From Scyliorhinus canicula (taxonomy: Eukaryota), in NCBI RefSeq assembly GCF_902713615.1, contig NC_052153.1, positions 8,071,569 to 8,135,568 on the forward strand: 64,000 bases of DNA. The letters are read 5' to 3'. Shown one piece after another: positions 9,440 through 54,762 of this stretch (its first letter is position 1; the number at the start of each line of letters is the position of its first letter). A program made the position numbers and the translations under genes. The notes beneath the pieces were generated by a model. It was not told where the DNA came from and searched no databases. It saw only the letters and a program-made list of their open reading frames with translations.

Positions 9440-10965
9440 CTTCAAAAACACTTGCGGTAGATAACGAAAGGCCCCCGCTCGTCGTAGTCCCTCTTGCGGA
9501 CCCAGAGCTGCTGGAAGGACTTGAGGGAGGCCATGATGGAGCCGCCCAGCCACACCGAGTAGCGGCGCTCGGGGATGGCGTGCACGGTGGGGTTCATGCC
9601 CTGCTCCATCTTGGTCATCTCCCGCTGCAGGCGCTCGGTGAAGCCGTCGAAGAGGGTGGAGCCGCCGCACAGCAGGATGTTGTGGTACATCTCGTACTTG
9701 AGGTTGCTGTCGCACAGGTCGAGGCTGTGCAGCGCCAGCGAGTGGACGCCCGGCTCCTTGGAGCCCAGCAGCGAGGGGTTGAAGAGGGCCTCGGGGCAGC
9801 GGAAGCGCTCCTTGCCCACGGCGATGAGGTGGCCGTCGGGCAGCTCGTACTCCACCAGGCAGTCGTTGGCGTCGAGCGCCAGGTCGCGCTCGAAGTTGAG
9901 CGCCGTGTAGCAGCACTTCTTCTTGATGTCCTCCACGATGTGGAGCCCCCTGTCGGTGAAGCGGTGGCCGGCCTCGTTGAGCATGCGCAGCAGGTAGTCG
10001 TTCAGGTCGGCGCCGCCGTAGTCGGCGCGCCCGGTCACGTGCGGCATGTTGTAGCCCTCGTGCACGGGCACGGCGTGCGTGACGCCGTGGCCGCACTCCA
10101 GCACCAGGCCGGTGGTGCGGCCGTACGAGTACAGGCTCAGGATGGACTGGTAGGCGATGTGCATGGCGGGCACGCTGAAGGTCTCGAAGAGCAGCTCGGC
10201 CATCTTCTCGCGGTTGGTGGTGGGGCTGAGCGGCGGGTCGGCCAGCATGATGGCGTGCTCCTCGGGCGCGATGCGCATGACGGACTCGAAGAGGTGGGCC
10301 CAGATGGCCTCCACCGCCTCCCAGTCCACCACGATGCCGTGGCGCAGCGGGTTGATCAGCTTGAGCGGCTGCTCCGAGCGCGCCAGCTCGTCGCCCACGT
10401 AGTTCTCCTGGCGGTTGTCGCCCGTCTTGGCGCTCATCTGCAGCGGGCGGCCCACCACCGAGGAGAGGACGGCGGCCGGCCGCGGCTGCCCGGCGTAGCC
10501 CACCTTGCAGTAGCCCGTGCCCATGTCGATCATCACCGAGCGGATCTCCTTCAGCACCTTGCCGCCGCCGCGGGCCGAGCGCCCGCCCTGCGACAGCCGC
10601 GAGGTCGACTTGTGCGGCTTGGCGGGCGGCGGGGTGCCCGTGCCCGCCTTCCTGACCGGCTGGCCCGGCGGCCTGGTCACCATCCTCCTCCGGGACCTCC
10701 TCTCCTCCTCCCCCTCCTCCTCGCCCGCGGCGCGCGTCCTGGGTTCCAGCCTGCCCGCCCTTCCCTCAGCCCACTCCCACACTTCCACACACACACCGGA
10801 CGGCCGGCGAGAGACACGCAATGGGCCCGGGCCGCCCGCCGCTAACCTTTTTGTAAGCGGCCCGCCGCTGTCACCAGGGCGACCGGACACTGGGCTATTG
10901 GCGGGTCACCTCTCCCCTCACAGCCGCCCCCTCAGTGACGAGCGGCGGGCACAGTGACGCCCGGC
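9440..10965. promoter_or_regulatory. CpG island covering the whole ACTL7A-like ORF and its promoter
   Basis: Very high GC and CpG density against an AT-rich, CpG-poor background; minus-strand TACAAAAA 10848-10855, CCAAT 10897-10901, TGACG half-CRE sites 10936 and 10955. Confidence 0.75.
9442..10683 (-). CDS. ACTL7A: Actin-like protein 7A-like, intronless, 413 aa
   Basis: ATG in strong context (aggATGG) at 10683; actin fold with DMGTGYCK, AKTGDNR, NPLRHGIVVDW, IAPEEHA, DPPLSP.TNREK, MHIAYQS, IVEDIKKKCC, YRKCF as in recalled mammalian ACTL7A; tail-to-tail with ELP1 as in human. Confidence 0.85.
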   Translation of the reverse strand: MVTRPPGQPVRKAGTGTPPPAKPHKSTSRLSQGGRSARGGGKVLKEIRSVMIDMGTGYCKVGYAGQPRPAAVLSSVVGRPLQMSAKTGDNRQENYVGDELARSEQPLKLINPLRHGIVVDWEAVEAIWAHLFESVMRIAPEEHAIMLADPPLSPTTNREKMAELLFETFSVPAMHIAYQSILSLYSYGRTTGLVLECGHGVTHAVPVHEGYNMPHVTGRADYGGADLNDYLLRMLNEAGHRFTDRGLHIVEDIKKKCCYTALNFERDLALDANDCLVEYELPDGHLIAVGKERFRCPEALFNPSLLGSKEPGVHSLALHSLDLCDSNLKYEMYHNILLCGGSTLFDGFTERLQREMTKMEQGMNPTVHAIPERRYSVWLGGSIMASLKSFQQLWVRKRDYDERGPFVIYRKCF

Positions 10966-11887
10966 TTTAAATCCCCCTCACCCCCAAATATGTGCAACGT
11001 TTCAAGGGGGCACATGCCCCAGACATGTGGGTCAACGAGGGCTGCAGCCCCCCAGCCTTCTGCAAACCAGAGAATACAATCTTCACATTCTCTCCTCCAT
11101 CTCAAACTGGCCTCAGAGGATACGGTTCAATAATGGACCTTTAGATGTATAATTCAGCCATTCCCCCTGATGGCATGGGCAGGCCACCTGGCCCCTTGTC
11201 CAAAAGGAAACCCAACTCATTTACTCGGAATCACTAGCTTTTGGAAAGCAGCTCCTTTTCGACTGGTGAACGTGCCCGGGTCGGAAAGCTAGTGATTCCA
11301 AATAAACCGGTTGGACTTTTATCCTGGTGCTGTCAGAGTTCTTACTCTACCTACCTTAGTCCAACCCAGTCGCCTCCACATCCTAAAACAACCACAGACC
11401 ATCCTATTGCAATGGAGGAATTGAGCGATCAACTCAAGTTATGTCATTATGGAAGGCAAATGCATCAATTTTGTTTGATGCCAGTTGTTCAGGTTGAGAT
11501 AAATGCAAGGCTTTTTGAGATAAATCCCTTGAGATCAAGGGATGTGGACCGGCCAGCATTTGTGTCCAGCCCCGAGAGCATTTAATGGTCAACACATAGC
11601 TGGGGTTCTGGAGTCCCGTGTAGGCCAAACCAAGTGAGGCTGACAGAGTTCCCGCCCTCAAGGATGTTAGTGAACCGGATGAGTTTTTAATAATCTTTAT
11701 TAGGTCACAAGTAGGCTTACATTAACACTGCAATGAAGTTACTGCGAAAATCCTCTCGTCACCACACGCCGGCACCCGTCCGGGTGCACAGAGGGAGAAT
11801 TCAGAATGTCCAATTCACCTAACAAGCATGTTTTTCGGAACTTGTGGAGGAAACTGGATCGCCCAGAGGAATCCCACACAGACACAG

Positions 11888-16095: not shown

Positions 16096-16595
16096 NNNNN
16101 NNNNNNNNNNNNNNNNNNNNNNNNNNNNNNNNNNNNNNNNNNNNNNNNNNNNNNNNNNNNNNNNNNNNNNNNNNNNNNNNNNNNNNNNNNNNNNNNNNNN
16201 NNNNNNNNNNNNNNNNNNNNNNNNNNNNNNNNNNNNNNNNNNNNNNNNNNNNNNNNNNNNNNNNNNNNNNNNNNNNNNNNNNNNNNNNNNNNNNNNNNNN
16301 NNNNNNNNNNNNNNNNNNNNNNNNNNNNNNNNNNNNNNNNNNNNNNNNNNNNNNNNNNNNNNNNNNNNNNNNNNNNNNNNNNNNNNNNNNNNNNNNNNNN
16401 NNNNNNNNNNNNNNNNNNNNNNNNNNNNNNNNNNNNNNNNNNNNNNNNNNNNNNNNNNNNNNNNNNNNNNNNNNNNNNNNNNNNNNNNNNNNNNNNNNNN
16501 NNNNNNNNNNNNNNNNNNNNNNNNNNNNNNNNNNNNNNNNNNNNNNNNNNNNNNNNNNNNNNNNNNNNNNNNNNNNNNNNNNNNNNNNNNNNNNN
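16096..16595. other. Assembly gap (500 N)
   Basis: Run of N. Confidence 1.
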
Positions 16596-17278
16596 TCTCC
16601 ATTGTTACTGTTTTACCTGATGTTTATGTAGTTTAACGACTTGGATTCAGAAGCCTAACTGGTTGTTTAAATTGTAGCTACTACGTTCTGATTTCTCCCT
16701 CCATGTACCCGAACATCACCGGAGTGTGGTGACTAGTAACTGTGGTCACAGTAACTTCATTGCAGTGTTAATGTAAGCGTACTTGTGACGATACAGATTA
16801 TTACTACTTTTTTAAGGGAAGTTGTTGAACTGTGTTCATACATTAGGTATTGGAGCTGTGTGTACCCACAGAGTGTATGAAACATTAGTTAGAGCCAAAT
16901 TGTTTCTGATTTTAATAATTTAATGCATTATAGTAACACCAATTTGCATTATTTGGTGCTTTTAATACCGTAAGGTCTGAGGTACTTTACAGGAGTGATT
17001 GTGAAACAAAATTTAACAAGTGATCCACATGAGATAATACATCAGTTGACCAGCAGCTTGGTGATTTCAAGGAGTATCTTAAAGGAGAAGATGGGGGTAG
17101 AGAGTTTTAATGAGGAACTACCACAGCTTTTAGTCTTGGCAGCCCTAGGTTTGGATGCCAGTGTTGGAAAGCTGGGATGAAGTCGTGGCCAGAATTGGAG
17201 GAGTGCAGTTGTAAGGCTAGAGGAGATTATGTATACAGAGGGTGACCTTACTGAGTAATTCATTTTTTGTCTTCTAGC

Positions 17279-17411
17279 ATGATGCGGGTTTGTTGGTTGG
17301 TGAGTAAAGATGGGAGGCACCAACCGATACGACTGGCGCACTCGGTTTGCGTGCTGATTGGAAGAAGTCCCGAAACCCAAATTACAGATAGAAAATGCTC
17401 ACGGCATCAAG
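17279..17411 (+). CDS. APTX: Aprataxin coding exon 1 (FHA domain start); full CDS is 1068 nt, 355 aa over 7 exons
   Basis: ttctag|cATGATG; [44 protein letters not shown]; donor G|gtaacc. Confidence 0.95.
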
Positions 17412-17578
17412 GTAACCTCACCAGTTGATTTGACAGCTGCTTGTGCTATAATGAATAAATCAAAAACTGCCGATTAAAGCCTGTGCTAATCAGACTCCTT
17501 GCATTTGTTAATGAGAAAACGGGTAAAAATGGTAGAATAATCACAACATTTTCAGTCTAATAAAATGGAGGCAGAGTT

Positions 17579-17800
17579 GGGCAGCACGGTGGCGCAGTGG
17601 TTAGCATTGCTGCCTCACGGCGCTGAGGTCCCAGGTTTGATCCCGGCTCTGGGTCACTGTCCGTGTGGAGTTGGCACATTCTCCCTGTGTTTGCGTGGGT
17701 TTCGCCCCCACGACCCAAAGATGTGCAGGCCAGGTGGATTGGCCACGCTAAATTGCCCCTTAATTGGAAAAAATGAATTGGGTACTCTAAATTTTAAAAA
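17579..17800 (+). mobile_element. V-SINE, short A-rich tail; further copies ~6268, 14833, 21805(-), 24135, 26715, 29955(-), 31180, 33100, 41578, 43183, 50680
   Basis: 15-bp TSD aaaatggaggcagag; A/B boxes and V-domain. Confidence 0.85.
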
Positions 17801-19021
17801 ATGGAGGCAGAGCTTTTGTTCTGAAAGCATTGAACTCTAACGTTGAGTACAGAGGCTGTAAAACGCTTCATCAAAAGATGAGGTGCTGTTTCTTGAGCTT
17901 CGTTAGGACAGAGAGGTGAGGAAATTAAAGTGACATGTAGCCACAAATTCAAGGCCATGCTTGCGATCATTCAGTCTGCGTTTTGTTTAACCTGTGTAGA
18001 GGAGACTATATCGTGACCAGCGAAGACCACATGTGACCCAAAATCAAACACACTCCATATGATCCTGTTGGCTAAATGATAATCATGAACTATTTTAATA
18101 CTGTGTATAAACAAAGTTAGCTTAGTATATGAATTGAGTAGGGGACTGGTTAGCTCAGTTGGCTGGATGGCTAGCATGTGATTCAGAACAACGGCAACAG
18201 TGCAGGTTCGATTCCTGTTCCCACTCAAGTAGACTTTGGGACCCGCTTCTTCGCCATGGCTCCCGAGAGTGGATGGCAATGGCAAACCACCACTAACAAA
18301 CAAAACTGCAATATAAACAACTCAGGATGAAGCATCAGTGGACAATGAGCCAAGAAGTTGCTTTGGGGAGAGGACACAAGTGAAATGGATTGAGTATGAA
18401 CTCTAAAGCACTGGTCGTCAGAAGGAATACATTAGACAAAACTTGAAGTGTCACACGGGAACAGGTAGATATGTTTGTCTACCTACGGTTTGACTAAATT
18501 TATTGAGCCATGGCTAGAGTTGGGGAGGGCAGGGATTGTGGGGGTCAGATGTGTATGTCACGAGTATTTAATGTTGCCAACTTTTAACTTGCTGATGAGC
18601 CCTGGGACTTGTACAAGATTTATTAATGTCTACTTTTCGTTTTAGTGTAGAGTACCAGCAATACAATAAAATCCACTGAGTCTCAAATTAGTTCTAAAGA
18701 GGCTGGCACAGGCATGATGGGCTGAATGGACTTACTCCACTGATTCGTATGATGCCCCAGATCTTCCGGTCTTTGGATAGTCAGAGACTGGACATAATTC
18801 CCAGGATACGCAATGAGATCTCTCGGAAGTTCTGATGCAATGACTCTGTGGGAATTGCTCACGAATTTTGAACGTCTGATGGGCAATTACCATGTTTCCT
18901 GGGCCCCTGCCTAACTCTTTAGTTAGAGTCACAGACTTTGTACAGTTCCAACTTATTTGCCTGGATAGATACCCAGGAAATGTTCGAAAATTCCTATAAC
19001 TGCTGGGTAACTGTACAGCTG

Positions 19022-19054
<33 letters not shown>

Positions 19055-19709
19055 CCCACCAAGTTGAAGTGACATGGCCCAACCTCACTAACCTACTCGT
19101 CCGCCCAACCTGATCCCCCAAACAAACTACTCCACTACTCTCTTGACCCGACTTCACCAGCTCAGCCTTCCCCGTCTCAACCTCACCACCCACTCATTAG
19201 CCACCCTTCCCCTTCCCCACACTACCTACTTATCCTACCTCCTCTACCCTGTCTCCCATCGTTATGTCCTTACCCACCCTATCCCCCTGATCTTACCCCC
19301 CCTCCTTACTCACTTAACTTTTCCCAGTAGCTTTCCAAAGAAGCTTTGGGATATTTGAACTCTCTACTTAGCAGCTGGTGCTGTAACTGGGGAGGTGGCG
19401 TCTGCATGGATTTCCCTTTGCTCCCTGTGAGGGTTGCTGTAGTGAGTCAGTTTGGAAGGATCCTCCATCGGTCGTTGGCCAGAAAAATCAGTGGACAGTA
19501 AGCAGGTATTTTATTATCCGTTCAGGATCAGAAATAGGTTTCCGCTCCTGATTGGAAGAGTTGTGTCTACAATTTTGTGAAATGTCAGAAATGAGGCTAA
19601 TGGTGTTCTTGCCTAGACTTATATGGAGAGGAATGGTAAAATGAGAAATTTAAAGGTAATTTCAGCAGATGGGGAAAATTAGCTTATAACTTTTTCTATT
19701 GTTTTCCAG

Positions 19710-19756
19710 TACAGCTGAAAGCAGATTACAATAAGGGATATGTTCTTGTAAAACAG
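19710..19756 (+). CDS. APTX: Aprataxin coding exon 2
   Basis: ttccag|TA...CAG|gtatag; (V)QLKADYNKGYVLVKQ, 47 nt. Confidence 0.93.
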
Positions 19757-20375
19757 GTATAGTATCTGTGCTTTGTTTCTTTAGTGTGTTTTCATGTGGC
19801 TAATGGACATGTTCAAATTTGAGGGGCTTTGAAACTGTTCCCACTGGCAGGAGGGTTGGTAATCAGAATTAAAATAATTACTTTGGAGACTTGGCGAAAG
19901 AACCCAGAGGGGGAGATGTCTTTTAAGCAATGGTTAATGGGCTGAAATGTTCTGCCCATTTAAGAAAAGCAGGGGGTATTGAGACTAACTCTGGTCAAAG
20001 AGCCAACACTGAAATGATGAGCCAAATGGCTTCCTTCTGTCCATGATCTTCTTTAAGTATGGCTTTAGATTAAATTACGTTGCCTAAATCAATGACTGGC
20101 GTAAAATGCTTACTAAAGAAGTTGCTGAAATGTGTGGTGGTCGATATGCTTCCTTTTTGCTTTGGATGCACATTCAGTGAAGAACAATTACTCAAATCAG
20201 GAAGTTGGTTAAATTCCTACAAGTTGATTGATTAAAATAATTCCTGGCTTAGCTGAATGGATGAAATGGTGGAATCAAATGTAAGTAGGATTAGGTCCTG
20301 ACATCTTTACTGAGTCATTATGGCCATGTTCTGTTGTGCCTGATTATGTACTTCCAGTTAAAAGTCTGTCTTGAA

Positions 20376-20835
20376 CTGGCCTTTGCGTCCCTAGTAGCCC
20401 GGCGAAGGATCTTGCTACAATGGAAGGATGCGAGGCCCCCAAGCGTGGAGACCTGGATCAATGACATGGCGGGTTTCATTAAGCTAGAGAAGATCAAATT
20501 CGCCCTGAGAGGGTCGGTACAAAGGTTCTTTAGGCGGTGGCAACCTTTTCTCGACTTTCTGGCTCAACGATAGGGTACTGGGACAGTAGCAGCAGCAACC
20601 CGGGGAGGGAAAAGGGGGGGGGCCGACAATGACTATGTTTGTTTATTTAATTTTAATATTTTTTAAAGTTCTTTTGTTGTTCCTTTGGGTTGGGGGGGTG
20701 GGGGGATGTGATACATGCGCCGATACGGTCTGGGGGTGTCACAGTTATTATGGGTTATTTTGTTGCATTTCATTGTTTGTCGTTATGTTTTATATTTTCT
20801 GTAAAAAATTCCAATAAAAATTATATTTATAAAAA
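20376..20835 (+). mobile_element. 5'-truncated L1 copy in an APTX intron
   Basis: Nearly identical to 49628-50100; A tail; 16-bp TSD aaaagtctgtcttgaa. Confidence 0.9.
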
Positions 20836-21040
20836 AAAAGTCTGTCTTGAAGCTGTTGAGGCTTAAATATCTACATACCACTCCTCTCAAAACAGGATTG
20901 GATAAATAATTCTAAGGCAAGGTACTATGGAAGCTTCAAGTGTGAAATCCAAACAGAAAATTTCTGGAAATACTCTGTAGCTTTCGAAAACTAATTATAT
21001 TTTGTTTTCCCGCCTCCCTCACCTCTCCCTGTCTCCAAAG

Positions 21041-21385
21041 TTGGGTATAAATCCGAGCTATGTCAATTCTGACGGTTTGGGAAGAGATCAGGAGGTGAAG
21101 CTAATGCCGGGACAGATCCTTCACGTTGTTAATCGGCATTACCCGTACACCATCCAGTTTGAGGGAGAGACTTCAGAGAAGGAGAGGCTGCCGCCAAAGA
21201 GACCACACAAAGAGATTTCTCCAGACAGCAGCGCCAACACTTTGAATAAATATCTTAAGGCCAAAGACTCCAATCCAAGGGAGCAGCACACGTTTAACAC
21301 TAAGCCCAAAGAGAAGAACCAGGGTGGGCACACAGCAGAAGATAGCAGCAATTCAATGACTCGGATCAACTCCGCTGAGGCCTGC
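21041..21385 (+). CDS. APTX: Aprataxin coding exon 3 (FHA end and linker)
   Basis: ccaaag|TTG; LGINPSYVNS...DQEVKLMPGQILHVVNRHYPYTIQFE; phase-0 donor TGC|gtgaga (alternative AAC|gtaatt at 21394). Confidence 0.88.
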
Positions 21386-22189
21386 GTGAGAAACGTAATT
21401 GATGGGTTGGGTTTAACTTGAGTCCTCTTACCAGTGATATGGTTGAAATAGCCCCACCTTCATTTACTGTGTGCGGAGTCTGCATGTTCTCCCCGTGTCT
21501 GCGTGAGTTTCCTCCGGGCGCTCCGGTTTCTCCCACAAGTCCCGAAACACTTGCTTGTGAAGTGAACTGGACATTCTGAATTCTCCCTCTGTGTACCCGA
21601 AACAGGCACCAGTGTGTGGTGACTAGGGGATTTTCACAGTAACTTCAATGCAGTATTAATGAAAGCCTACTTGTGACAATACAGATTATTATTATTGTAC
21701 CTCAATGTCCAACACCTTGATGGGATTTGAACCCATATCGCCAACGCATTAGCCTAGGCCTCTGGATTACTAGACAATGACACCATTCTCCTAAAGTTCT
21801 AGTTCTTTTTTTAAAGTTTAGAGTGCCCAATTCATTTTTTCCAATTAAGGGGCAATTTAGCGTGGCCAATTCACCTACCCGGCACAACTTTGGGTCGTGG
21901 GGGTGAAACCCACGCAAACACGTGTTGAATGTCCAAACTCAACACGGGCAGTGACCCAGAGCCGGGATCGAACCTGGGTAATTGGCGCCGTGAGGCAGCA
22001 GTGCTAACCACTGCGCCACCATGCTGCCCTTAAAGTTCTAGTTCTAACTATGGTCGCAAGTCTTCAGTGTGATCTCAAATAAAAAAATTTTAAATTTTAG
22101 AGTAGCCAATTATTTTTTTCCAATTAAGGGGCAATTTAGCGTGACCAATCCACCTACCCTGCACATCTTTGGGTTGTGGGGATGAAAGC

Positions 22190-22929: not shown

Positions 22930-22989
22930 GATTTTCAGGGAATGTGGAGCCAGGGACTAAAAGTTTCCATGCAGGATCCAAAAATGCAG
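22930..22989 (+). CDS. APTX: Aprataxin coding exon 4
   Basis: ttttag-type acceptor |GAT...CAG|gtatac; DFQGMWSQGLKVSMQDPKMQ, 60 nt. Confidence 0.95.
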
Positions 22990-28345: not shown

Positions 28346-28370
28346 AATATTCAGCTGTCCGTCTCTTTTC

Positions 28371-42023: not shown

Positions 42024-42952
42024 TGTGATGAATATAGGAATTACAGATATATTATATTTTATTTGGTGCAGTAAAGGTTAAATGGCTGTGTTCATGTGTG
42101 ACTGCTGCAGTAGTGTTTTTAAAGAATCATGGTTTGAGAGGTTTTGGAAGCCAGGGGTGCCATTAACACATTGTAAATGCTGGGCTAATTGAGTTTTGTT
42201 TGGACTAAGTGGATTCCCTGTGGAGTTAATTGGATACATATTCCCTGTGGAGTTAATTAGATACATGTGTTTCAGCTTGGTAAAATTATGTGATTAATGT
42301 GAGGAGCTAAATTATCAGGCATTTTGCACAAATGCAGTTTTAGTTGAGTTTAAGATTGGGATGTGAGCAGACGTCAAGCATCTGCTCTCACTGCTGTTCA
42401 GTTAAAGATTTGACTAGCGACAGACCTGAAACAGAATTTACCTGTGAACAGGATAGGCCGTGAATTGAGACAGACAGGAGTTTTCCGTTGGTTCTAGAGA
42501 TAGAAGACAAATCACAAAGACAGTTTCTGAAGACTTCAGCTAGAAATCCTGCCATGTTCGGACAAGATTCAGGTCTATCTCTTCCAACAGTCTCAAAGTA
42601 GAGTATCCAGATATCTCTATACAGCAGGTATTCCTGAGTGCTGATGGTATTTGAAAATGGATTGTGAGTTGAGATACTTTTGTTGTATGAGTGGGAATAA
42701 AGATAGCAGTTAAGGGTTACTCTATTCATTATATTTATTAGCATTGTGTAAGGGGTAATTGTAAGCTATTTTTCACGTGTGATATTTTAATATTGTGTCA
42801 GTAATAAAGTTTGATTTAATATACCATATCCCTATTTTGTGTGAACTCATTTCTGGGGTGAGGTATCCGTTCCTCACAGTCATACAAAATTAAAATACAA
42901 TAATGGGGTTTCTGTCCAAGCCACCATTGGGGTCTGGTCTAGGATTGTAATA
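42024..42952 (+). mobile_element. Possible solo LTR
   Basis: TGTGATG start, AATAAA ~42803, decayed TGTAA(C>T)A end; no clear TSD. Confidence 0.4.
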
Positions 42953-44547
42953 GGAGAGATCATTAAAGAGGATGCTGTTGTCAACTATGTCAGACATTAC
43001 AGAGAAGATGAAGAGAGATAATGTATCACTGTCTAACAGAAAGCAATTGGGGGAGAGGGCGGCAAATTGGTAACGTCGCTGGATTAATAACCCAGAGGCA
43101 CCGGTCAATAATTTGGGGACAAGGGTTCAAATCCCACCATGGCAGCTAGTGGAATTTAAATTCAGTTAATAAACCTAGACTCGGGGCGGCATATGGCGCT
43201 GTGGTTAGCACTGGGACTGCGGTGTTGAGGACCCGGGTTCGAATCCTGGCCCTGGGTTGCTGTCCGTGTGGAGTTTGCACATTCTCCCCATGTCTGCATG
43301 GGTTTCACCCCCACAACCCAAAGATGTGCAGGTTAAGTGGATTGTCCACGCTAAATTGCCCCTTAATTGTAGAAAAAAAAGTCTGGTAAATTTATTTTTT
43401 AGAAACCTAGACTCCGTAATAGTGACCATGAAACTATCATTGATTGTTGTAAAAATTAATAATCTCTTTAGGGAAGGAAATCTACTATCCTTACCTGGTC
43501 CAGCCTGCATGTGATTCCAGACCTATAGCAGTGTGGTTGACACTTAATAGCCCCCCTGAAATGACCTAGTAAGCCACCCAGTTCAAGGGAAATTAGGGAT
43601 GGTCAACAAATGCTGACCCAGCTGGAGATGCTGTCAGCCTATGAAAGAATAAACAAAAGAGGAATTTTAGTTGGGAACACTTTTCAGAGCTCAGAAGGAC
43701 TGATTGTAGAACATCAAATTGCAGAAGAGGAGGCCACACATCTAGGAGACCATGGTCAACAATTATGAATAGGAAAACAAGTTTTGGAGGCGGGTCAATA
43801 GTTTGACAGACATGGTGGCCAAGGGTATTTGCTGAAAATCCTTTCATGGGGACTTCCGGTGTGCATCATGGAGTGAGTGATCACACAGAGGCAGCTCCTG
43901 CCTCAGGTTACAAAAAAGAGCTCTTTTTTAAGCAACACGGGTTGGAATTTCGATGAAAAGGCGTAGATGAATGTTCGAGGAGTACTTTCCCCCAGGAATA
44001 GTATGTTTCTTGGTTATCAGACCCTCAGAAACAGTGCAAGATTTGTCTGAAGCAGCAGCAAACAAAAGCCTCTGCAAGCATGCAAGCGGGGGAAGGGCCA
44101 GCTTAGAGGTCTCAAGCTGACTTGAGGGCCTTTATGAAAGCTGAATTCTAGCAGCAGAGGGAAGAACTGTGAAAAGATCTCACCAAGGCCATTGAAGAAG
44201 CGGAGACGGACTTCCGGTAGCGGTGATGCGGAGCTAAGCCGCACGTTCAGTGGCTCCCACTATTTCCGGACTTTGGGGCTCTTTTAAGGGCTCGTAGTGG
44301 TGCTGTTTGGACTTTTCCCCATGTGGGAACACTCCTTCTCAGATTCTCCACCGGTGGATGGCCTGGACTAGGAGTGGAGCGGTCAGAAAATCGGCTTTGG
44401 AGATTTCCAGTTGCGGCTATGCGGAGCTAAGCCGCACCTCAGCTCCCGCTACTTAAGGACTTTTGGGCCGATTTGAGGGCCCCAAACGGTGCTGTCTCGA
44501 CGAATCCCGGTGGGGGAAGGTGTCTAGAGGAGCATTCCCCATAATTT

Positions 44548-45390
44548 ATGGTGCTCACCCGGAGTGGGGCAAAGGAAAAAGCTGCAGCAGCTCCCCAAGA
44601 AAAGCGGGGGAAGGACAAAATGGCGGCTGGCAGAACACCCGAGGATTGGTGGAAGTGGCCGCAGGAGCAGCAGGCCTCTCTTCTGCGCTGTTTTGCGGAG
44701 CTGAAGGCTGAGTTGCTGGACTCCCTGAATGCGACTACAAACAAGCTGCTTGGGGCCCAGGCGGCCCAGAGGGTGGCCATTCGGGAGTTGCAGCAGCAGG
44801 CCGCTGATCGGGAGGAGGAGGCCGTGGTCCTCGTGGGGAAAGTGGAGTTGCACGAGGCACTTCACAAAAAGTGGCAAGACCGCTTGGAGGAGCTGGACGT
44901 TCGCATGAGGCGAAAGAGTTTGAGGATCCTGGGCCTGGCGGAGGGGCTGGAGGGGTCGGATCTCCCGTCGTACGTGACCACGATGTTGAGCTCGTTGATG
45001 GGAGCGGGATCCTTCCATTTGCCCCTGGAGCTTGAGGGAGCCCACAGAGTGCTGGCCAGGAGGCCTAAGGCAAATGAACCCCCGCGGGCGGTGCTGGTGC
45101 AGTTCCATCGATTTAGTGACCGGGAGTGTGTGCTGCGCTGGGCCAAGAAAGAGAGGAGCAGCAAGTGGGAGAATTCAGTAGTGTGAATCTACCAGGACTG
45201 GAGTGCAGAGGTGGCTAAGCAGCGGGCCGGGTTCAACCGGACAAAGGCGGTGCTGCATGCCAAGCAGGTCAGATTTGGAATGCTGCAGCCTGCGCGTCTG
45301 TGGGTGACATATAAGGACCGGCACCACTACTTCGAGTCCCCGGAGGAGGCGTGGCCTTTGTACAGGCGGAGAAGCTGGACTCGAACTAGG
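44548..45390 (+). pseudogene. L1 ORF1 (coiled coil plus RRM-like), interrupted
   Basis: LEELDVRMRRKSLRILGLAEGLEG...LEGAHRV...PPRAVLVQFHRF; TGA at 45184 where IYQDW continues; MLQPARLWVTY. Confidence 0.8.
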
Positions 45391-46046
45391 GTCTGGGGAC
45401 ACACTATGGCCGTTGCTGTTTTCGCTGTTGCTGTTCTTCAATTTTGACACGTGTTTTTTTTACGCTGGTTTTCTTTTTGCTCTGTTTCCGGGTGGGTTTG
45501 TCTGTTGGGTATGGGTGTGGTGTATGTGGGGAACGTTGGGGGTATGTGCTTTATATGTTCTCTTCTGTACGGGGCTGGGGGTTGGGGTGAAACTGGATTT
45601 TGAGGAGCTGCGTCAGAAGGGTGGGGTGTGGCAGTGTGAAAGCGCGGGCTTTCCTCTGGTTGTCCGCGCTGCGGGGCGGGGGGGGGAGCTGGAGGTGGGG
45701 GCGTGGCCTCTACTGGTTTTCTTTCCCGCGCTGAAGCGGTGCCAAGGAGGTGTGGCAAGAGGGGGATGACCCCATGCCGGGAGGAGATGGGTTTTGGCAG
45801 GAGCTGCCGGGTCAGCAGAAGTCAGCTGACTCACGGAAGTACCATGGAGGGTGCGTCGCGGCTAGGAGGGGTCCTAGCCTGGGAGGGTGGGGGGGGGGGG
45901 GGGGGGGGGATGGGGGGGATACCGTTGCTGGAATGGCCAGGAAGGAGCTGGTGTGGGCCGGGGGGGGGGGGGAGAGGAGAGGCGTTATCGCCATGGGGAA
46001 CGGGTCAGGCGGGGCGAGCTGGCCTGGGGCGAGCAGTCGATAAGCT

Positions 46047-49000
46047 ATGGCTAGCCGGCGGGGGAGAGGGGCAGGTTGCCCTCTGATCCGGCTGATTACC
46101 TGGAACGTGAGGGGGTGGAATGGGCTGGTTAAGAGAACTAGGGTATTTTCTCATCTGAAGGGGCTGAAGGCGGACGTGGCTATGCTCCAGGAGACCCACT
46201 TGAAGGTGGCGGATCAGGTTCGTCTGAGGAAGGGGTGGGTGGGGCAGGTTTTCCATTCAGGATTGGACGCGAAGAACCGGGGGATGGCGATTCTGGTGGG
46301 GAAGAGGGTGGCGTTCGAGGCGGCTGAGGTGGTGTCGGACAAGGAGGGCAGATATATCATGGTGAAGGGTAGGCTGCAGGGCGAGAAGGTGGTGCTGGTT
46401 AATGTATATGCCCCGAATTGGGATGATGCCGGCTTCATGAGGCGCTTGTTGGGCCGCATTCCGGACCTGGAGGCAGGGGGCCTGATCATGGGGGGAGACT
46501 TTAACACAGTGCTGGATCCCCCACTGGACCGGTCCAGTTCAAGGACGGGTAGGAGACCGGCGACGGCCAAAGTGCTGAGGGGGTTTATGGACCAGATGGG
46601 AGGGGTGGATCCCTGGAGGTTTGGGAGGCCGAGAGCGCGGGAGTATTCCTTTTTCTCCCATGTCCATAGGGTCTATTCCCGAATAGATTTTTTCATCCTG
46701 AGCAGGGTATTGATCCCGAAGGAGCAGGATGCAGAGTATTCGGCCATAGCGATTTCAGACCATGCTCCGCACTGGGTTGATCTGGAGATGGGTGAGGCGC
46801 GGGACCAGCGCCCGCTCTGGCGCCTGGATGTGGGGCTGCTGGCTGATGAGGAGGTGTGTAGGAGGGTCCTGGGAAGTAGTGAGGGGTATCTTGATACCAA
46901 CGACACGGGGGAGGTCCGGGTGGGGATGGTCTGGGAGGCTCTGAAAGCAGTGATCCGGGGGGAGCTGATCTCCATCCGGGCCCATAGGGCAAGGAGGGAG
47001 AGGAAGGAGAGGGAGAGACTGGTGGGGGAGCTCCTGGATGTGGACAGGAGATACGCGGAGGCACCGGAGGAGGGGTTTCTAGGGGAACGGTGTAGTTTGC
47101 AGGCCAAATTTGACTTGTTGACCACCAGAAAGGCGGAGACACAGTGGAGGAGGTCGCTGGGCACGGTATATGAGTATGGGGAGAAGGCGAGCAGGATGTT
47201 GGCGCATCAGCTCCGCAGGCGAGATGCGGCTAGGGAAATTGGTGGAGTGACGGATCGGGGTGGGAATGTAGTGCAGAAGGGGACAGAAGTAAATGGGGTC
47301 TTTAGGGACTTCTACGAGGAACTGTACCGGTCAGAACCTCCGATGGGGAGAGGGGGGATGGAGAGCTTCATGAACAGGCTATGGTTCCCAAGGGTTCAAG
47401 AGGAGCTGGTAGAGGGGCTGGGGGCGCCGATAGAGTTGGAGGAGCTAGTCAGGGGGATTGGACAAATGCAGTCAGGTAAGGCGCCGGGGCCGGACGGGTT
47501 CCCGGTGGAATTTTATAAAAAGTATGCGGATCTGTTGGTGCGAGCCTTCAATCAGGCATGGGGGGGGGGCTTTGCCCCCGACGATGTCGCGGGCACTGAT
47601 CTCTCTGATCCTGAAGCGAGATAAGGACCCCTTGCAGTGTGGATCATACAGGCCTATCTCGCTCCTCAATGTTGACGCTAAGTTGCTGGCGAAGATCCTG
47701 GCCACCAGGATAGAGGACTGTGTGCCGGGGTGATACACGAGGATCAGACAGGATTTGTCAAGGGACGGCAGCTCAACACGAATGTGCGGAGACTACTAAA
47801 TGTTATTATGATGCCGGCAGTGGAGGCGGAGGCTGAGATAGTGGTGGCGCTGGATGCGGAGAAAGCATTTGATAGAGTTGAGTGGGGGTACCTGTGGGAG
47901 GTGCTGGAGCGGTTCGGATTCGGGGAGGGATTCATCAAATGGGTGAGGCTGCTCTACGTGGCTCCGATGGCAAGTGTAGTTACCAATGGAAGGAGATCGG
48001 AGTACTTTAGGCTCTACCATGGGACCAGGCAGGGGTGCCCTCTGTCCCCCTTGCTCTTTGCACTGGCGATTGAACCTTTGGCTATGGCGTTGAGGGAGTC
48101 AGGGAGATGGAGGGGTCTGGTGCGGGGTGGGAGGAACATCGTGTATCGCTGTATGTGGGCGACCTGCTGTTGTATGTGGCGGATCCAGAAGGGGGAATGC
48201 CGGGGGTGATGGAGCTGTTAGCGGAATTTGAGGGCTTCTCGGGCTATAAGTTAAATTTAGGCAAGAGTGAGGTATTTGTAGTACACCCGGGTGATCAGGA
48301 GGAGGGAATTGGGAGACTCCCATTTAAGAGGGCAGTGAAGAGTTTCAGATACCTGGGGGTGCAGGTGGCCAGGAGTTGGGGGACTCTCCATAAGCTTAGT
48401 TTTACCAGGCTGGTGGAGCAGATGGAGGAGGAATTTAAAAGGTGGGACATGGTGCCGCTATCGTTGGCGGGTAGAGTGCAGTCCGTCAAAATGACAGTTC
48501 TCCCGAGGTTCTTGTTCCTTTTTCAGTGTTTGCTCATCTTTATCCCTAGGGCCTTTTTTTAGAAGGGTGACTAGCAGCATCATGAACTTTGTTTGGGCGC
48601 ATGGGACCCCGAGGGTGAAGAGGGTCTTCTTGGAGTGGGGTAGAGATGGGGGGGGCTGGCGTTACCCAATCTCGCGGGGTATTATTGGGCGGCCAATGTG
48701 TCGATGGTGCGCAAGTGGGTAATGGAGGGGGAGGGGGCAGCATGGAAATGGATGGAGAGGGCGTCCTGTGGAGATACAAGCCTGGGGGCCCTGGTAACGG
48801 CGACGTGGCCGCTCCCTCCTACGAGGTATACCACGAGTCCGGTGGTGGCGGCTACCCTCAAGATTTGGGGGCAGTGGAGGCGACATAGGGGAGAAGTGGG
48901 GGGCTCAATGGAGGCTCCGTTAAGGGGGAACCATAGGTTCGTCCCGGGGAACATTGATGGGGGATTTCAGGGTTGGCACAGAGCGGGCATCAGACAGCTG

Positions 49001-49824
49001 AGGGACCTGTTTATTGATGGGAGGTTTGCAAGCCTGGGGGAGTTGGAGGAGAAATTTGGGCTCCCCCGGGGAACATGTTCAGGTATCTGCAGGTAAAGGC
49101 ATTTGCTAGGCGGCAGGTGGAGGGATTCCCTTCGCTTCCCGCGAGGGGGGTGAGCGACAGGGTGCTTTCGGGGGTCTGGGTCGGAGAGGGGAAGATATCT
49201 GATATCTACAAGGTTATGCAGGAGGCGGAGGAGGCGTCAGTAGAGGAGCTGAAAGCTAAGTGGGAGGGGGAACTGGGGGAACAGATCGAAGACGAGACAT
49301 GGGCTGATGCCCTGGAGAGGGTTAATTCTTCCTCCTCGTGTGCGCGGCTTAGCCTCATCGAATTCAAGGTGCTGCACCGGGCCCACATGACTGGGACGAG
49401 GATGAGTAGGTTCTTTGGGGGTGAAGACAGGTGTGTCAGGTGCTCGGGGAGTCCAGCGAACCATGCCCATATGTTCTGGGCATGCCCGGCACTGGAGGAG
49501 TTCTGGAAGGGGGTGGTGAGGACGGTGTCGAGGGTGGTGGGATCCAGGGTCAAGCCAGGATGGGGACTCGCGATTTTTGGGGTTGGGGTGGAGCCGAGAG
49601 TGCAGGAGGCGAAAGAGGACGGTGTGCTGGCCTTTGCGTCCCTAGTAGCCCAGCGAAGGATCTTGCTACAATGGAAGGATGCGAGGCCCCCAAGCGTGGA
49701 GACCTGGATCAATGACATGGCGGGTTTCATTAAGCTAGAGAAGGTCAAATTCGCCCTGAGAGGGTCGGTACAAAGGTTCTTTAGGCGGTGGCAACCTTTT
49801 CTCGACTTTCTGGCTCAACGATAG
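46047..49824 (+). pseudogene. L1 ORF2 (APE endonuclease, RT, C-terminal zinc knuckle), frameshifted
   Basis: TWNVRG, LQETH, VNVYAPN, GGDFN, SDH, GPDGFP, LDAEKAFDRVEW, GTRQGCPLSP, RYLGV, C..C...HMFWAC; catalytic YADD reads YVGD. Confidence 0.88.
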
Positions 49825-51034
49825 GGTACGGGGACAGTAGCAGCAGCAACCCGGGGGGGAGGGGGAGGGAAAAGGTGGGGGGGGGGGGGCGGAGGCGGAC
49901 GATAACTATGTTTGTTTATTTAATTTAAATTTATTTTTAAGTTCTTTTGTTGTTCATTGGGGTTGGGGGGGGGGGGATGTGATACATGCGTCGATACGGT
50001 CTGGGGGTGTTACAGTTATTATGGGTTATTTTGTTGCATTTCATTGTTTGTCGTTATGTTTTATATTTTCTGTAAAAAATTCCAATAAAAATTATATTAA
50101 AAAAAAAGAAAATCCTTTCATGGGATGTTGGTGTTGAGTAGCTCTTGTGAAGGTGATGGCGAGCCACCTGCTTGAACTGTTGCACTCGATGTGGTGTGGG
50201 TATTCTACCAAATGAAGGACGATGGCTGTTTTGAAGGGGCGGTGGGCAGAGGGTTATGTGGATACCAAGTTCTGGGGATTGGGAATGAAGGGAGAAAGCA
50301 GTGGGTCTTGTGGAGCAATTGAGTTCAGAAGGGGCACGGGGAGATAACAGGGGACACATAGAGGGAGTTAGGGCATTGAAGCTGAGGTTTGAGTTAGTGA
50401 GCTGGGTGAAGGGGAGGGCGTGGTGGGGCGGGCGAGCTGTGGGGATCGGTGGTGCAGAGCAGATGCAGTGAAAAAGGTTTAGTTCACTCATTAAATGTTT
50501 ATATTATGAAGAAAGGTTGAACAGTTGGGCTTATACCCATTGAGATTTAGAAGAACGAGAGCTGATCTTATTGGAACATGTAAGACCCTGAGGGGATTTG
50601 AAAGGGTGGATACCCAGAGGATGTTTCCTCTTGCGAGGGAGACTAGAACGTGAGGCACAGTTTAAGAATAAGACGTCTAGGGCAGCACGGTGGTGCAGTG
50701 GGTTAGCCCTGCAGCCTCACAGCGCCGAGGTCCCAGGTTCGATCCCGGCTCTGGGTCACTGTCTGTGTGGAGTTTGCACATTCTCCCCATGTCTGCGTGG
50801 GTTTCGCCCCCACAACCCAAAGATGTGCAGGGTAGGTGGATTGAACACGCTAAATTGCCCCTTAATTGGAAAAAATGAATTGGGTACTCTAAATTTATTT
50901 TTAAAAAGAATAAGACATCTCCCTTTTAAGGCAGAGATGAGATGAGGAGAATTTTTCTCGCTCAAATGGTTGTTAGTCTGTGGAATTCTCTTCCCCAGTG
51001 AGCAATGGAGTCTGGGTCAGTCAATTTATTCAAG

Positions 51035-51398
51035 GCAGAATTATAGAATTTACAGTGCTGAAGGAGGCCATTCGGCCCATCAAGTCTGCACCGACTCTTG
51101 GAAAGAGCACTCTACCCAGGTCCACACCTCCACCCTATGCGTATAACCCAGTAACCCTACCCAACACTAAGGGCAATTTTGGATATTAAGGGCAACTTAA
51201 CATTGCCAATCCATCTAACCTGCACATCTTTGGACTGTTGGAGGAAACCGGAGCACCTGGAGGAAACCTAACCCTAACCCACGCAGACACTGGGAGAATG
51301 TGCAGACTATGCACAGACAGTGACCCAGCCGGGAATCGAACCTGAGACCCTGGAGCTGTGAAACAATTGTGCAAATCACTATGCTACCGTGCTGCCCA
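51035..51398 (-). mobile_element. V-SINE with CR1-like tail; similar copies ~26817-27113 (-), 40175-40500 (-), 52412-52725 (+)
   Basis: V-domain plus tail gatgggccgaatggcctccttcagcactgtaaattcta. Confidence 0.7.
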
Positions 51399-53496
51399 GA
51401 TTTTTGATTGAAAAGGTAGTTGAGGGTTATGGGGGAGGGAGGAAAGTGGAGCTGAGACCACAGCCAGATCAGCCATGATCTTATTGAATGGTGGAGCAAA
51501 TGCAAAAGGCTGAATGAGTCATAATCATAGAGCCTTAAAGTATTGCACACAGAAACAGGCCCTTTGTCCCATCATGTTTGTGCCAGCCATCAAGCACCTA
51601 TCTATTCTAATCCCATTTTCCAGCACTTGTGCCGTGGTCTTGTGTGCTATGGAGTTAGAACTGCTCATTCAAATGCTTCTTAAATGGTTTACTCCTGCTC
51701 CTATGTTTTATGTTTCAAACAGATAACTCTAATCTTGGAAATGTACGAGTCTCAGCAAAATTAATCTAACTTTTATGAATGTGGCTGTGTGGTTGCCTAT
51801 TACTGTCCTGGTTCTGCTTCCTGTTTTTGGTATCACCTGCGAGCATCAAGACATCGCATTAAAATAAATATCCAAAATAATCAATATATTCAAAATACCA
51901 AATGCCCCAATACCCATTAATCTCATTTGGAACTACTTTTCAGGCTCTATGTTGGATCATCCTTTGGTCCTGCTTTTAAAAGCACAGTATACCCATAGTT
52001 ATTCACTATTCCCTGAAGACTTCTGCTCTGTGGTAATTGAAAGATGATCCGGGAAGCGCTTATTTTTTTTCTATTCTTTCACAGGATATGAATGTCGCTG
52101 GCAAAACCAGCATTTGGTGCCCATCTCTAATTGCCCTTGAACTGAGTCACTTGCTGGGCCATTTCAGAGGGTTTTGGGAGTGAAGAGAGAAAGGAGTGGG
52201 TCTTGCGGAGGAATTTTCAGAAAGGGCGTAGGAGATAAGAAGGGTCTGGAGTCAGATGTTGGTCAGACCAGGTAAGGACGGCAGATTTCCTTCCCTGAAG
52301 AACGTTAGTGAACCAGATGGATTTTTACAACGGTCAACAATGGTTTCATGGTCATCATTAGACTTTTAATTCCAAGTTTTTATTAAATTAAAATTTCACC
52401 AAATGTCCTGGTGGGCTGCACGGTGGTTAGCACTGCTGCCTCACAGCTCCAGGGACTCGGGTTCAATTCTTGCCTGTCTGTGTGGAGTCTGCACTTTCTC
52501 CCTGTGTCTGCGTGGGTTTCCTCCGGGTGCTCTGGTTTCCTCCCACAATCTAAAGATCATCCGATTAGGTGGATTGGCCGTGATAAATTGCCCCCTAGTG
52601 TTGGAAAGGTTAAGTGGGGTTATGGGGATAGGGTGGAGGCATGGCCCTAAGGTGCTCTTTCCAAGGGCCCATGCAGCCTCAATGGGCTGAATGGACTCCT
52701 TCTGCACTGTAGGAATTCTATGATTCCAACCGGGCTCCCAGAGTATTACCCTGGGTCTCTGGATTTCTAGTCCAGTGACAATAACAGGACGCCACAATCT
52801 GTTGTCCTGCCAGTCTAAATCCTCCAACCATTACTGAACTGATGGATTGGTCGCTGTGTGTGGGATCTTGCTGCGCGCACGTTAGCTGCCGAAACTCCTA
52901 CCTAAGGAAGCGCCTTTGGGACATACTGAGGTGGTGAAAGGTCGCGATGGAAGTGCGAATACTTACCCTGGCCGTCACTTATTGCCATCCGCTCCAAAAT
53001 CAATGGAAATTATTTTAAAATACTTTTCTCCGGTGTCTGCGGTTCGCCCTGTCTGCTAAATTCAGCGGCAGCAACTTCCCTTTGGCAGGGTGTAAGCCTT
53101 CCTTTGGAGAAAAGACTGCGGTGAGCCAGATTCGAACCAAGTGACCGGCAGCAATTCTAATGCAGCAGGATGAGAGATGGACATGGTGTGGGCTCATGTG
53201 GGTTTGACCCTCCCATCACAATTCTGAGATAGTGTCGTCGGTAAACCGGGGGTGGGGGCATCAGCCACTAAATTCACCGGCAAAAAAACCCCCAACTTGG
53301 ACAGAAAGAGTCTCAGATCAACGTGATATGACTTGATAATGGCCCCGCTGCCTGACGCGCATGGTAACAGCACAAACAAAGGTAATAATCGGGAGAGAAA
53401 CAGCATTGTTATCCCATCTTAACCACGAAAGGTAGCCACTGAAGAGGGTAGGGTTTCTTTTGCAAATGTAAGGGCATAATCGAAACAGAAAGAGCC

Positions 53497-54762
53497 ATGA
53501 AGTCATCGAATTTACACATTCGGAAATGTTCTTTACCCATCGGGGTTCTCTGCAGGAAATACCCCTCCAATACCACTCAATCGGTAAGATCAGAGCCCAG
53601 GATGTCGTCCTTCTCTTCAATAGACAGCCATAGCATCCATCCTGCCAGGATGATCAAGGAGATCAGGGCACTGATGATTGACATGGGCACGGGCTACTTC
53701 AAAGCAGGGTTCGGTGGCCAGGCCAAGCCTTCAGTGGTCATCTCTTCCACGGTGGGCAGGCCCATGCAGCGAAGCGCCAAGACCGGGGACAACCGGCAGG
53801 AGAACTTTGTGGGCAGTGAACTGAGAGCCCCCTTTGAGCTGCGGCTCATCAACCCCCTCCGGCATGGCATCGTGCTGGACTGGACTGGCGCCGAGGCTCT
53901 CCTGTGCTACATCTTCGATAAGGAGCTGAAGGTGCGGCCCGAGGACCACGCCGTGATGGTGGCTGACCCACCCCTCAGCCCCGTTACTAACCGCGAGAGG
54001 ACGGCTGAGCTCCTCTTTGAGGCCTTCGGCATCCCAGCCATTCACATCACCAGGCAGTCACTGCTCTCCATCTATGCCTATGGGTGCACTAGTGGGCTGG
54101 TGGTAGAGAGCGGCTTTGGCTCAAGTTGTGTGGTCCCCATCCATGAAGGTTATATTATGCCGCACATCACTGCTACCGTCGACTATGGGGGAAGCGACCT
54201 CACCAAGTACTTGCTCAAACTTATCAACCACAATGGTTACAAGATAGGTGCCAGTGAGTATCATTTGGTGGAGAAGATCAAACAGGAATATTGTTACACT
54301 GCCATTGACTTTGACAATGAAATGCGTAGTGAGACTAAAGAGTACACAGCACACTATGAACTTCCAGATGGTAAGATTATCACAGTTGGTAAAGAAAGGA
54401 TCAAATGTCCCGAGGCCCTCTTCAATCCATCACTCATGGGCTCCAGAGAGGCTGGGCTGCACACAATGGCTCTGAACATCATCAATAAATGTGACCCCAG
54501 CCTGCTCGAGGAAATGTACAAAAACATCCTCCTCTGTGGAGGCTCGACCATGTTCTCCGGATTCCGCGTTCGTTTCCAGAAGGAATTAAGGAAACTGGTG
54601 CAGGATATGAACCCACAAGTTCAAGCAATTCCTGAGAGGAAATATTCAGTCTGGTATGGAGGGTCAATCCTATCCTGCCTCAAATCCTTTCAACAACTTT
54701 GGGTTAGCAAAAAGGATTATGATGAGCGCGGACCACTGGCCATCTATAGGAAATGTTTCTGA
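53497..54762 (+). CDS. ACTL7B: Actin-like protein 7 paralog (7B-like), intronless, 421 aa
   Basis: gccATG start; actin fold; FGIPAIHITRQSLLSIY, SGLVVESG, QQLWVSK and AIYRKCF resemble recalled ACTL7B; shares AKTGDNR with 7A. A/B orthology is not proven. Confidence 0.75.
   Translation: MKSSNLHIRKCSLPIGVLCRKYPSNTTQSVRSEPRMSSFSSIDSHSIHPARMIKEIRALMIDMGTGYFKAGFGGQAKPSVVISSTVGRPMQRSAKTGDNRQENFVGSELRAPFELRLINPLRHGIVLDWTGAEALLCYIFDKELKVRPEDHAVMVADPPLSPVTNRERTAELLFEAFGIPAIHITRQSLLSIYAYGCTSGLVVESGFGSSCVVPIHEGYIMPHITATVDYGGSDLTKYLLKLINHNGYKIGASEYHLVEKIKQEYCYTAIDFDNEMRSETKEYTAHYELPDGKIITVGKERIKCPEALFNPSLMGSREAGLHTMALNIINKCDPSLLEEMYKNILLCGGSTMFSGFRVRFQKELRKLVQDMNPQVQAIPERKYSVWYGGSILSCLKSFQQLWVSKKDYDERGPLAIYRKCF

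Follow-up and report, generated by a model that had tools for sequence, protein, structure and literature searches.

The two intronless actin-like genes of Scyliorhinus canicula studied here, named c1 and c2, are probably tandem ACTL7 duplicates that arose in the chondrichthyan stem, independently of tetrapod ACTL7A and ACTL7B (7A and 7B), and the scaffold piece that carries c2 is likely flipped. Both genes lie in the window, the whole 64,000-nucleotide stretch of DNA that was analysed. The genes and their poly(A) signals are as follows.

9442..10683, minus strand: c1, intronless ACTL7 paralogue (413 aa, span including the stop; ORF and Pfam Actin)
9287..9292, minus strand: c1 poly(A) signal AATAAA, 150 nt past the stop
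53497..54762, plus strand: c2, intronless ACTL7 paralogue (421 aa, span including the stop; ORF and Pfam Actin)
54881..54886, plus strand: c2 poly(A) signal AATAAA, 119 nt past the stop

The profile search with Pfam Actin (PF00022) matched c1 at E=2.8e-111 over profile positions 2-410, and c2 at E=4.9e-100 with the match split in two stretches. Both proteins have a full-length actin fold and are already annotated in public databases. Both coding regions are single-exon, the ORFs being uninterrupted, and no N gap touches either of them. An earlier note had described two intact single-exon actin-like ORFs with poly(A) signals and unrelated N-terminal extensions, and this description held. The extensions of c1 and c2 could not be aligned with each other, though each is kept within its own set of orthologues. 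The motifs that the note had quoted were all found in c1 and c2. The GC3 of c1 was 98.8%.

A reading of 9442-10890 as the c1 ORF was a GTG-extended one and was rejected. The ATG at 10683 is the real start (413 aa), because the N-terminus can be aligned to that of the orthologues in elephant shark and skate and the exact 413-aa protein is already public. The Callorhinchus gene (416 aa) is 77.5% identical to c1, N-terminus included. A first search gave no shark orthologue and no self-hit, and c1 was briefly considered an unannotated gene; exact look-up ruled this out, as the identical protein is present in public databases (P0160). In the database clustering, c1 proteins sit in a cluster represented by a c2-type protein. 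The self-match of c2 is P0001, and its Mustelus orthologue is 88% identical. One-to-one orthologues of both c1 and c2 were found in chimaera, skates, rays and sharks. The dN/dS values of c1 and c2 were 0.09-0.25, indicating that both are under purifying selection.

RNA evidence for c1 came from run X1.

9374..10820, minus strand: stretch covered in run X1 by a single unspliced RNA-assembly contig of 1463 nt at a k-mer depth of 1638

This contig was colinear with the genome across the whole c1 ORF, and the k-mer depth in the c1 flanks in the same run was 2-23, versus 1638 over the contig. The c1 transcript is thus an unspliced mRNA. Its RNA exceeded the flanks about 100-fold in X1 and stood close to background in X24 and X25; the runs carry coded tissue labels. 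As c1 k-mers were present in 18 runs, wide expression was considered, and it was rejected because the contigs showed X24 and X25 near flank-level background. By k-mer presence, c2 was nearly complete in only a few of the runs, again under coded tissue labels. Full CRE sites were rarer than expected by chance, and neither the c1 nor the c2 promoter had one. Upstream of the genes, only CGTCA and TGACG half-sites were seen, which we do not count as evidence.

An ML phylogeny of the kind proposed in the earlier note was run. In the 79-row tree, c1 and c2 fell inside an ACTL7 clade (100/99), with ACTL9 and conventional actin as separate outgroups; the family assignment made earlier was thereby upheld. 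The two catshark genes grouped together outside the tetrapod 7A+7B clade, with support of 97/86 in the 63-row tree and 99/94 in the 79-row tree, which had better outgroups. Support for the Osteichthyes ACTL7 clade was 97/91. The tetrapod 7A+7B clade had 100/100 support, and coelacanth, gar and sharks lay outside it. Site patterns pointed the same way. Twenty alignment columns were shared within c1 and c2 and within 7A and 7B (c1=c2 and 7A=7B), against 3 columns with c1=7A and c2=7B. These results favour a chondrichthyan ACTL7 duplication separate from the tetrapod one, with c1 and c2 being co-orthologous to both 7A and 7B.

The earlier note had offered two alternatives, an independent duplication in this lineage and an ancient A/B split with one copy inverted later. 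The tree, the AU test and the site patterns sided with the former. The latter, in which c1 would be the ACTL7A orthologue and c2 the ACTL7B orthologue, is highly improbable. Its attractions are that c1 stands tail-to-tail with ELP1, as human ACTL7A does, and that c2 and 7B have a few residues in common (ITxQSLLSIY, LWVSK, AIY). Against it, the AU test rejected a c2+7B grouping (delta lnL 73-77, p=0.0004-0.0006), only 3 columns fit it versus the 20 for the alternative, and gar carries a single gene. Nor is c1 an orthologue of tetrapod 7A, since the 100/100 clade of 7A and 7B excludes both catshark genes. The labels attached to the two copies also fell. Copy 1 had been called 7A-like, yet its motifs MHIAYQS and IVEDIKKKCC also occur in the gar and coelacanth genes and are ancestral states. 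Copy 2 had been called 7B-like, yet 6 columns were common to c2 and 7B only and 5 to c1 and 7B only, so c2 showed no excess.

Another candidate history is a duplication before the split of cartilaginous and bony vertebrates, with one copy lost in the bony-vertebrate stem and the survivor duplicated again in tetrapods. In AU tests, neither c1+Osteichthyes (p=0.068 and 0.104) nor c2+Osteichthyes (p=0.166 and 0.106) was rejected, and neighbouring copies that underwent early gene conversion could mimic a lineage-specific duplication. We consider this history distinctly unlikely, since the ML tree joins c1 and c2 at 99/94, the 20 columns common to the two genes set them against tetrapods, an extra loss is required, and gar, sturgeon and coelacanth each gave one ACTL7 type only in searches. 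Under the preferred, chondrichthyan-specific duplication, a single ancestral ACTL7 between APTX and ELP1 would have undergone one tandem duplication in the chondrichthyan stem, ahead of the chimaera-elasmobranch split, to give c1 and c2. Both copies would have been kept by purifying selection as single-exon genes, each with its own promoter and poly(A) signal.

The neighbouring genes, elements and gaps were then laid out along the window.

1325..1429, plus strand: probable upstream ELP1 exon (matches gar ELP1 in its 3' part at 54% across 35 aa; weak)
3162..3245, plus strand: ELP1 last coding exon, C-terminal 24 residues (PDB matches, Callorhinchus locus match)
16096..16595, no strand: 500-N scaffold gap, intergenic, left edge of the inverted block
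16596..57094, no strand: 40.5-kb block with APTX, a LINE and c2, inverted versus the conserved order APTX>c2>c1><ELP1
17264..28342, plus strand: APTX (aprataxin) coding exons (translated matches to APTX of elephant shark, skate and gar; Pfam)
40770..40928, no strand: 159-N gap within one LINE 3' end, its flanks collinear with two other element copies
44548..49824, plus strand: LINE retrotransposon with ORF1-like, endonuclease and RT-associated zinc finger parts (ORFs, Pfam)
57095..57594, no strand: 500-N scaffold gap, intergenic, right edge of the block; it must hide or displace upstream DNAJA exons
60079..60291, plus strand: isolated C-terminal exon from a DnaJ subfamily-A gene (DNAJA2 C-terminus match, E=7e-7)

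ELP1 was confirmed solely through its last exon, by PDB and cross-species matches. The only PDB matches of 3162..3245 were human ELP1 residues 1308-1331 of 1332, and the same exon matched the Callorhinchus locus downstream of c1. It stands tail-to-tail with c1, at 6.2 kb from the c1 stop, bearing out the ELP1 adjacency noted before; the arrangement is the same in Hemitrygon, S. torazame and gar. The segment at 1325..1429 had neither a Pfam nor a PDB match, and Pfam found no ELP1 domain in the ORF fragments of 1878-3319 and 1325-1492. APTX was read from six exons (17264-17425, 21038-21211, 22933-22992, 23119-23358, 26479-26595 and 28196-28342) with the Pfam domains FHA_2, HIT/DcpS_C and zf-C2HE. 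The LINE lengthens the spacer between APTX and c2. Continuity across the LINE-internal 159-N gap is plausible, because both of its flanks run collinear with two further copies of the element. The DNAJA exon ends in a CQTS CaaX box, and no other DnaJ exon signature was found anywhere in the window. This lone last exon beyond the gap at 57095-57594 demonstrates a loss of sequence there.

As assembled, c1 and c2 are arranged head-to-head and separated by 42.8 kb that include APTX. In contrast to this divergent pair, five other chondrichthyan assemblies have the tandem order APTX>c2>c1, with <ELP1 next in line in loci that extend far enough. The distance between c2 and c1 was 4.5 kb in Callorhinchus (elephant shark), 5.2 kb in Leucoraja (little skate) and 5.0 kb in Mustelus (houndshark); two S. 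torazame assemblies, from the same genus as the catshark, gave 9.4 and 9.8 kb. Spotted gar has a single ACTL7 in the order APTX>ACTL7><ELP1. The window differs from the other species by one inversion, both ends of which fall within short intervals holding the 500-N gaps, and these gaps mark the exact limits of the block 16596-57094. With the block flipped, the order becomes ELP1> <c1 <c2 <APTX, and the distance between c1 and c2 becomes 2332 + 5412 = 7744 bp plus a gap of unspecified size, reproducing the 7.7 kb given earlier. The tandem layout suggested at that time matches every other chondrichthyan examined, the two congener assemblies included.

Judged from gene order in other species and the positions of the gaps, the head-to-head layout most likely reflects a wrongly oriented scaffold piece of 40.5 kb. 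The true order would be ELP1> <c1 <c2 <APTX, with about 8-10 kb between c1 and c2. A real, lineage-specific inversion of the APTX-c2 block in S. canicula, leaving the ACTL7 genes truly head-to-head, is unlikely. It would agree with the layout given by the assembly; inversion breakpoints are often found in the kind of repeats that produce assembly gaps, and SINE-like repeats are present near the block edges. However, the tandem order holds in Mustelus, in skate, in chimaera and in the two independent S. torazame assemblies. Each breakpoint would need to sit in an interval with a 500-N join, one of 6.6 kb and the other of 5.3 kb, and the third gap demonstrably lacks sequence. The assembly was scaffolded with 17x Hi-C, and Hi-C scaffolding orients pieces of about 40 kb poorly. 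At the ACTL7 locus, the catshark reference probably has a 40-kb piece flipped and lacks most of a DNAJA gene, which matters to users of local synteny or regulatory landscapes there.

The catshark pair resembles mammalian ACTL7A/ACTL7B (mouse Tact2/Tact1) in belonging to the same family clade, in being intronless, in having an extension N-terminal to the actin fold, in adjoining ELP1 and in being under purifying selection. The mammalian paralogues are about 57-59% identical (PMC10652042), as are c1 and c2. A difference is that the shark pair apparently came from a separate duplication, co-orthologous to both mammalian genes, and has APTX as its other neighbour. Mouse and human ACTL7A/ACTL7B are head-to-head (PMC6642428), whereas the pair is tandem in other chondrichthyans. 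PF16840 (the ACTL7A N-terminal domain) is recorded for mammalian and turtle 7A, whereas the Pfam search of both catshark proteins did not report it for c1 or c2. Caecilian 7B has no neighbour within 10 kb in the gene table.

By analogy with mammals, the most likely role of c1 and c2 would be that of cytoskeletal ARPs in spermatids. Rather doubtful is a further scenario, in which independent duplications of a sperm-type ARP gene in cartilaginous fishes and tetrapods were followed by parallel partitioning. In it, c1, like 7A, would be slow-evolving, near-ancestral and highly expressed, and c2, like 7B, would be faster-diverging and more narrowly expressed, with a few convergent 7B-like residues. 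None of the papers listed in a literature search tied ACTL7 to cartilaginous fishes. The understanding of how ACTL7 proteins work is unchanged by these results, which amount to ordinary biology with an assembly caveat.

Spotted gar ACTL7, like that of sturgeon and coelacanth, is one gene, versus two in catshark; c1 keeps the ancestral motifs, and the gar locus has the same neighbours. The ancestral jawed-vertebrate locus was probably APTX-ACTL7-ELP1 with one gene, which would make the ACTL7 family old and the A/B pair not. Because the duplications appear independent, the names 7A and 7B are not transferable to c1 and c2. RefSeq names are inconsistent, the same chondrichthyan ACTL7 orthologue being called 7A, 7B, actin-3-like or actin-6-like, and its 7A/7B labels on chondrichthyan genes should not be taken as orthology. 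ACTL9-type testis actin-like genes, absent from this window, form their own clade (99/98) outside ACTL7; they share the actin fold, are about 50% identical and also occur in sharks.

Exactly two actin-like coding regions were detected in the window by tblastn, the ACTL7 paralogues c1 and c2. No N run touched either ORF.

Features of the window, from left to right
3162–3245, plus strand: last coding exon of ELP1, whose PDB matches were solely human ELP1 residues 1308–1331 of 1332
9442–10683, minus strand: c1 ORF, Pfam Actin across the whole fold (E=2.8e-111)
16096–16595: first 500-N gap, with the c1 5′ flank on its left and, after ~670 bp on its right, APTX coding exon 1
17264–28342, plus strand: APTX exons, between c1 and c2; the first coding exon carries an FHA_2 domain
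20520–20839: copy of the LINE 3′ end
40702–41141: another copy of the LINE 3′ end, holding the 159-N gap
40770–40928: 159-N gap, inside a LINE 3′ end
44548–49824: LINE with ORF1-like, endonuclease and zf-RVT regions and long ORFs
53497–54762, plus strand: c2 ORF, Pfam Actin across the whole fold (E=4.9e-100)
57095–57594: third gap, 500 N, with a lone DnaJ exon on its right
60079–60291: DnaJ subfamily-A C-terminal exon, CaaX end CQTS

The two proteins were 59% identical over 373 residues. As the earlier note had stated, their N-terminal extensions were mutually unrelated. Each extension was conserved inside its own orthologue group. The reported poly(A) signals were also present, with AATAAA 150 nt past the c1 stop codon and 119 nt past that of c2. 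The actin-like c1 ORF described before (9442–10890) stood, except for its start at an upstream GTG. The true start is the ATG at 10683, because the resulting N-terminus (MVTRPP...KSTSRLSQ) aligned with the elephant shark and skate orthologues and because public databases already record an identical 413-aa protein. Pairwise dN/dS of c1 and c2 against skate and chimaera orthologues was 0.09–0.25, indicating purifying selection on both. Both genes belong to the ACTL7 clade, encode an actin fold in a single exon, and are intact and conserved. By analogy with mammals, their likely role is that of non-canonical actin-related proteins in the subacrosomal/perinuclear cytoskeleton and the cytoplasm of spermatids (PMC10652042, PMC9976968).

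The order as assembled was ELP1> <c1 (gap) APTX> c2> (gap) DNAJA exon. The last ELP1 exon and c1 lie tail-to-tail, 6.2 kb apart, and the LINE at ~44.5–49.8 kb lengthens the APTX–c2 spacer. The flanks of the 159-N gap matched two other copies of the LINE with order and orientation kept and 50–72 bp between the matched parts, making continuity across this gap plausible. Unlike this gap, the two 500-N gaps decide the gene order. The DnaJ exon was the sole gene feature right of the third gap, and no further DnaJ exon signatures were found anywhere in the window, indicating that sequence is missing or displaced there. Directly past that gap (57595–58260) lie a C-rich low-complexity stretch and then ~100-bp tandem units with a repeated cagtgtcaatttcagcggcc motif.

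Gene order in other species
Elephant shark: APTX> c2> c1>, c2 to c1 4.5 kb
Little skate: APTX> c2> c1>, c2 to c1 5.2 kb
Mustelus asterias (of the same order as catsharks): APTX> c2> c1>, c2 to c1 5.0 kb
Scyliorhinus torazame, a congener (two independent assemblies): c2> c1> <ELP1, c2 to c1 9.4 and 9.8 kb
Hemitrygon akajei: c1> <ELP1, and APTX> c2>, spacing more than 10 kb
Spotted gar: a single ACTL7, in the order APTX> ACTL7> <ELP1

In S. torazame, ELP1 was 6.8–6.9 kb beyond c1. The catshark window differed from all compared species by one inversion, that of the APTX–c2 block. Flipping 16596–57094 restored the common order; the c1 start then lay downstream of the c2 stop, at a distance of 2332 + 5412 = 7744 bp plus the gap, reproducing the 7.7 kb calculated in the earlier note. 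The tandem arrangement proposed there was seen, as c2>c1, in elephant shark, little skate, M. asterias and S. torazame, and tandem is the probable native arrangement of the shark pair. Human DNAJA1 and APTX form a head-to-head pair, a layout that would agree with the flipped order. Both breakpoint intervals, c1–APTX exon 1 (6.6 kb) and c2–DNAJA exon (5.3 kb), contain a 500-N join. Hi-C scaffolders typically leave joins of this kind, and they frequently place pieces in the range of a few tens of kb in the wrong orientation. The inversion could be real and specific to this species, which we consider unlikely; the head-to-head layout very probably reflects a misoriented scaffold piece. According to the genome paper, scaffolding of the S. 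canicula assembly (sScyCan1.1, GCF_902713615.1) relied on scaff10x, BioNano and 17x Hi-C.

An ML tree of 63 rows (LG+C20+F+G4) placed c1 and c2 in one clade (97/86) and Osteichthyes in another. A second tree of 79 rows included seven more shark/ray c1 sequences and ACTL9 of many vertebrates, with conventional actins as root. The supports were 99/94 for c1+c2, 97/91 for bony-vertebrate ACTL7, 100/100 for tetrapod ACTL7A (7A) plus ACTL7B (7B), and 100/99 for ACTL7 as a whole. A grouping of c2 and mammalian 7B was rejected by the AU test whether or not amphibian 7B-type genes were included (delta lnL 73–77, p=0.0004–0.0006); c1 alone or c2 alone as sister to all bony-vertebrate genes was not rejected (p=0.07–0.17). 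Site patterns over 236 usable columns were in accord with the tree. In 20 columns, c1 matched c2 and 7A matched 7B while the lineages differed; three paired c1 with 7A and c2 with 7B, and none showed the reverse. Columns common to c2 and 7B only numbered six, and those to c1 and 7B only numbered five. The c1 motifs called 7A-like in the earlier note also occur in gar and coelacanth, so they are ancestral. The ancient A/B split suggested there was contradicted, and its alternative, an independent ACTL7 duplication, was favored. Neither shark gene has a one-to-one counterpart in 7A or 7B; the pair is co-orthologous to both.

Together with the trees, gar's one ACTL7 at the corresponding locus makes a three-step history the simplest. 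The jawed-vertebrate ancestor would have had one ACTL7 between APTX and ELP1, tandemly duplicated in the chondrichthyan stem; a separate duplication would have given rise to 7A and 7B, whose tetrapod copies, as far as sampled, all form one clade. Gene conversion at an early stage could produce the same pattern. In mouse and human, 7A and 7B lie head-to-head (PMC6642428). In the 79-row tree, amphibians had three ACTL7 lineages, no firm link of their 7B-type genes to mammalian 7B was recovered, and genes named bird 7B grouped with bird 7A. The date of the A/B split in tetrapods deserves re-examination.

RefSeq annotates these genes in many cartilaginous fishes, with names of both orthologue groups varying by species (7A, 7B, actin-3-like, actin-6-like). 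The c1-type and c2-type proteins (~59% identical) share one nominal 90% cluster, that of database protein P0003, so shark c1 orthologues were all hidden from homology search. In the papers found by the literature searches, ACTL7 of cartilaginous fishes was not discussed. Our additions are modest: the co-orthology, the probable native tandem order and the probably flipped reference assembly at this locus.

For transcription, k-mers were looked up in coded sequencing runs. Presence of c1 k-mers was at least 0.71 in 18 runs, and c2 k-mers were near-complete only in a few probable RNA runs (X1 0.97, X2 0.95, X3 0.84, X12 0.89). Contigs and reads were placed on 8300–12300, the c1 region. In X1, a single 1463-nt contig spanned 9374–10820 at a k-mer depth of 1638, versus 2–23 in the flanks, and was colinear with the genome except for a single third-position difference and an altered CA-repeat length in the 5′ leader. 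It represents abundant unspliced c1 mRNA and shows strong c1 transcription in at least one sample. In X24 and X25, c1 depth (~20) was close to flank levels (5–17), so k-mer presence there is no evidence of real expression. The oligo-dT run X20 gave a few reads close to the c1 3′ end. At 10785, in the leader, the (GT)n tract was longer by one CA in all three contig runs, and X1 had a third-codon-position G>A at 9958; both are probably ordinary polymorphisms. The regions flanking c1, 8836–9103 and 11650–12300, reached depths up to 3e5 in all RNA runs with many internal joints, and are SINE-like elements, highly expressed or highly repeated.

The c1 coding sequence had a GC3 of 98.8% and a GC of 68%, versus 46–47% GC in its flanks. 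GC3 was 88% in the skate orthologue, 72% in that of elephant shark and only 63% in c2. A C homopolymer of ~45 nt follows the c1 stop codon. The high c1 GC could reflect GC-biased gene conversion or selection on intronless mRNA.
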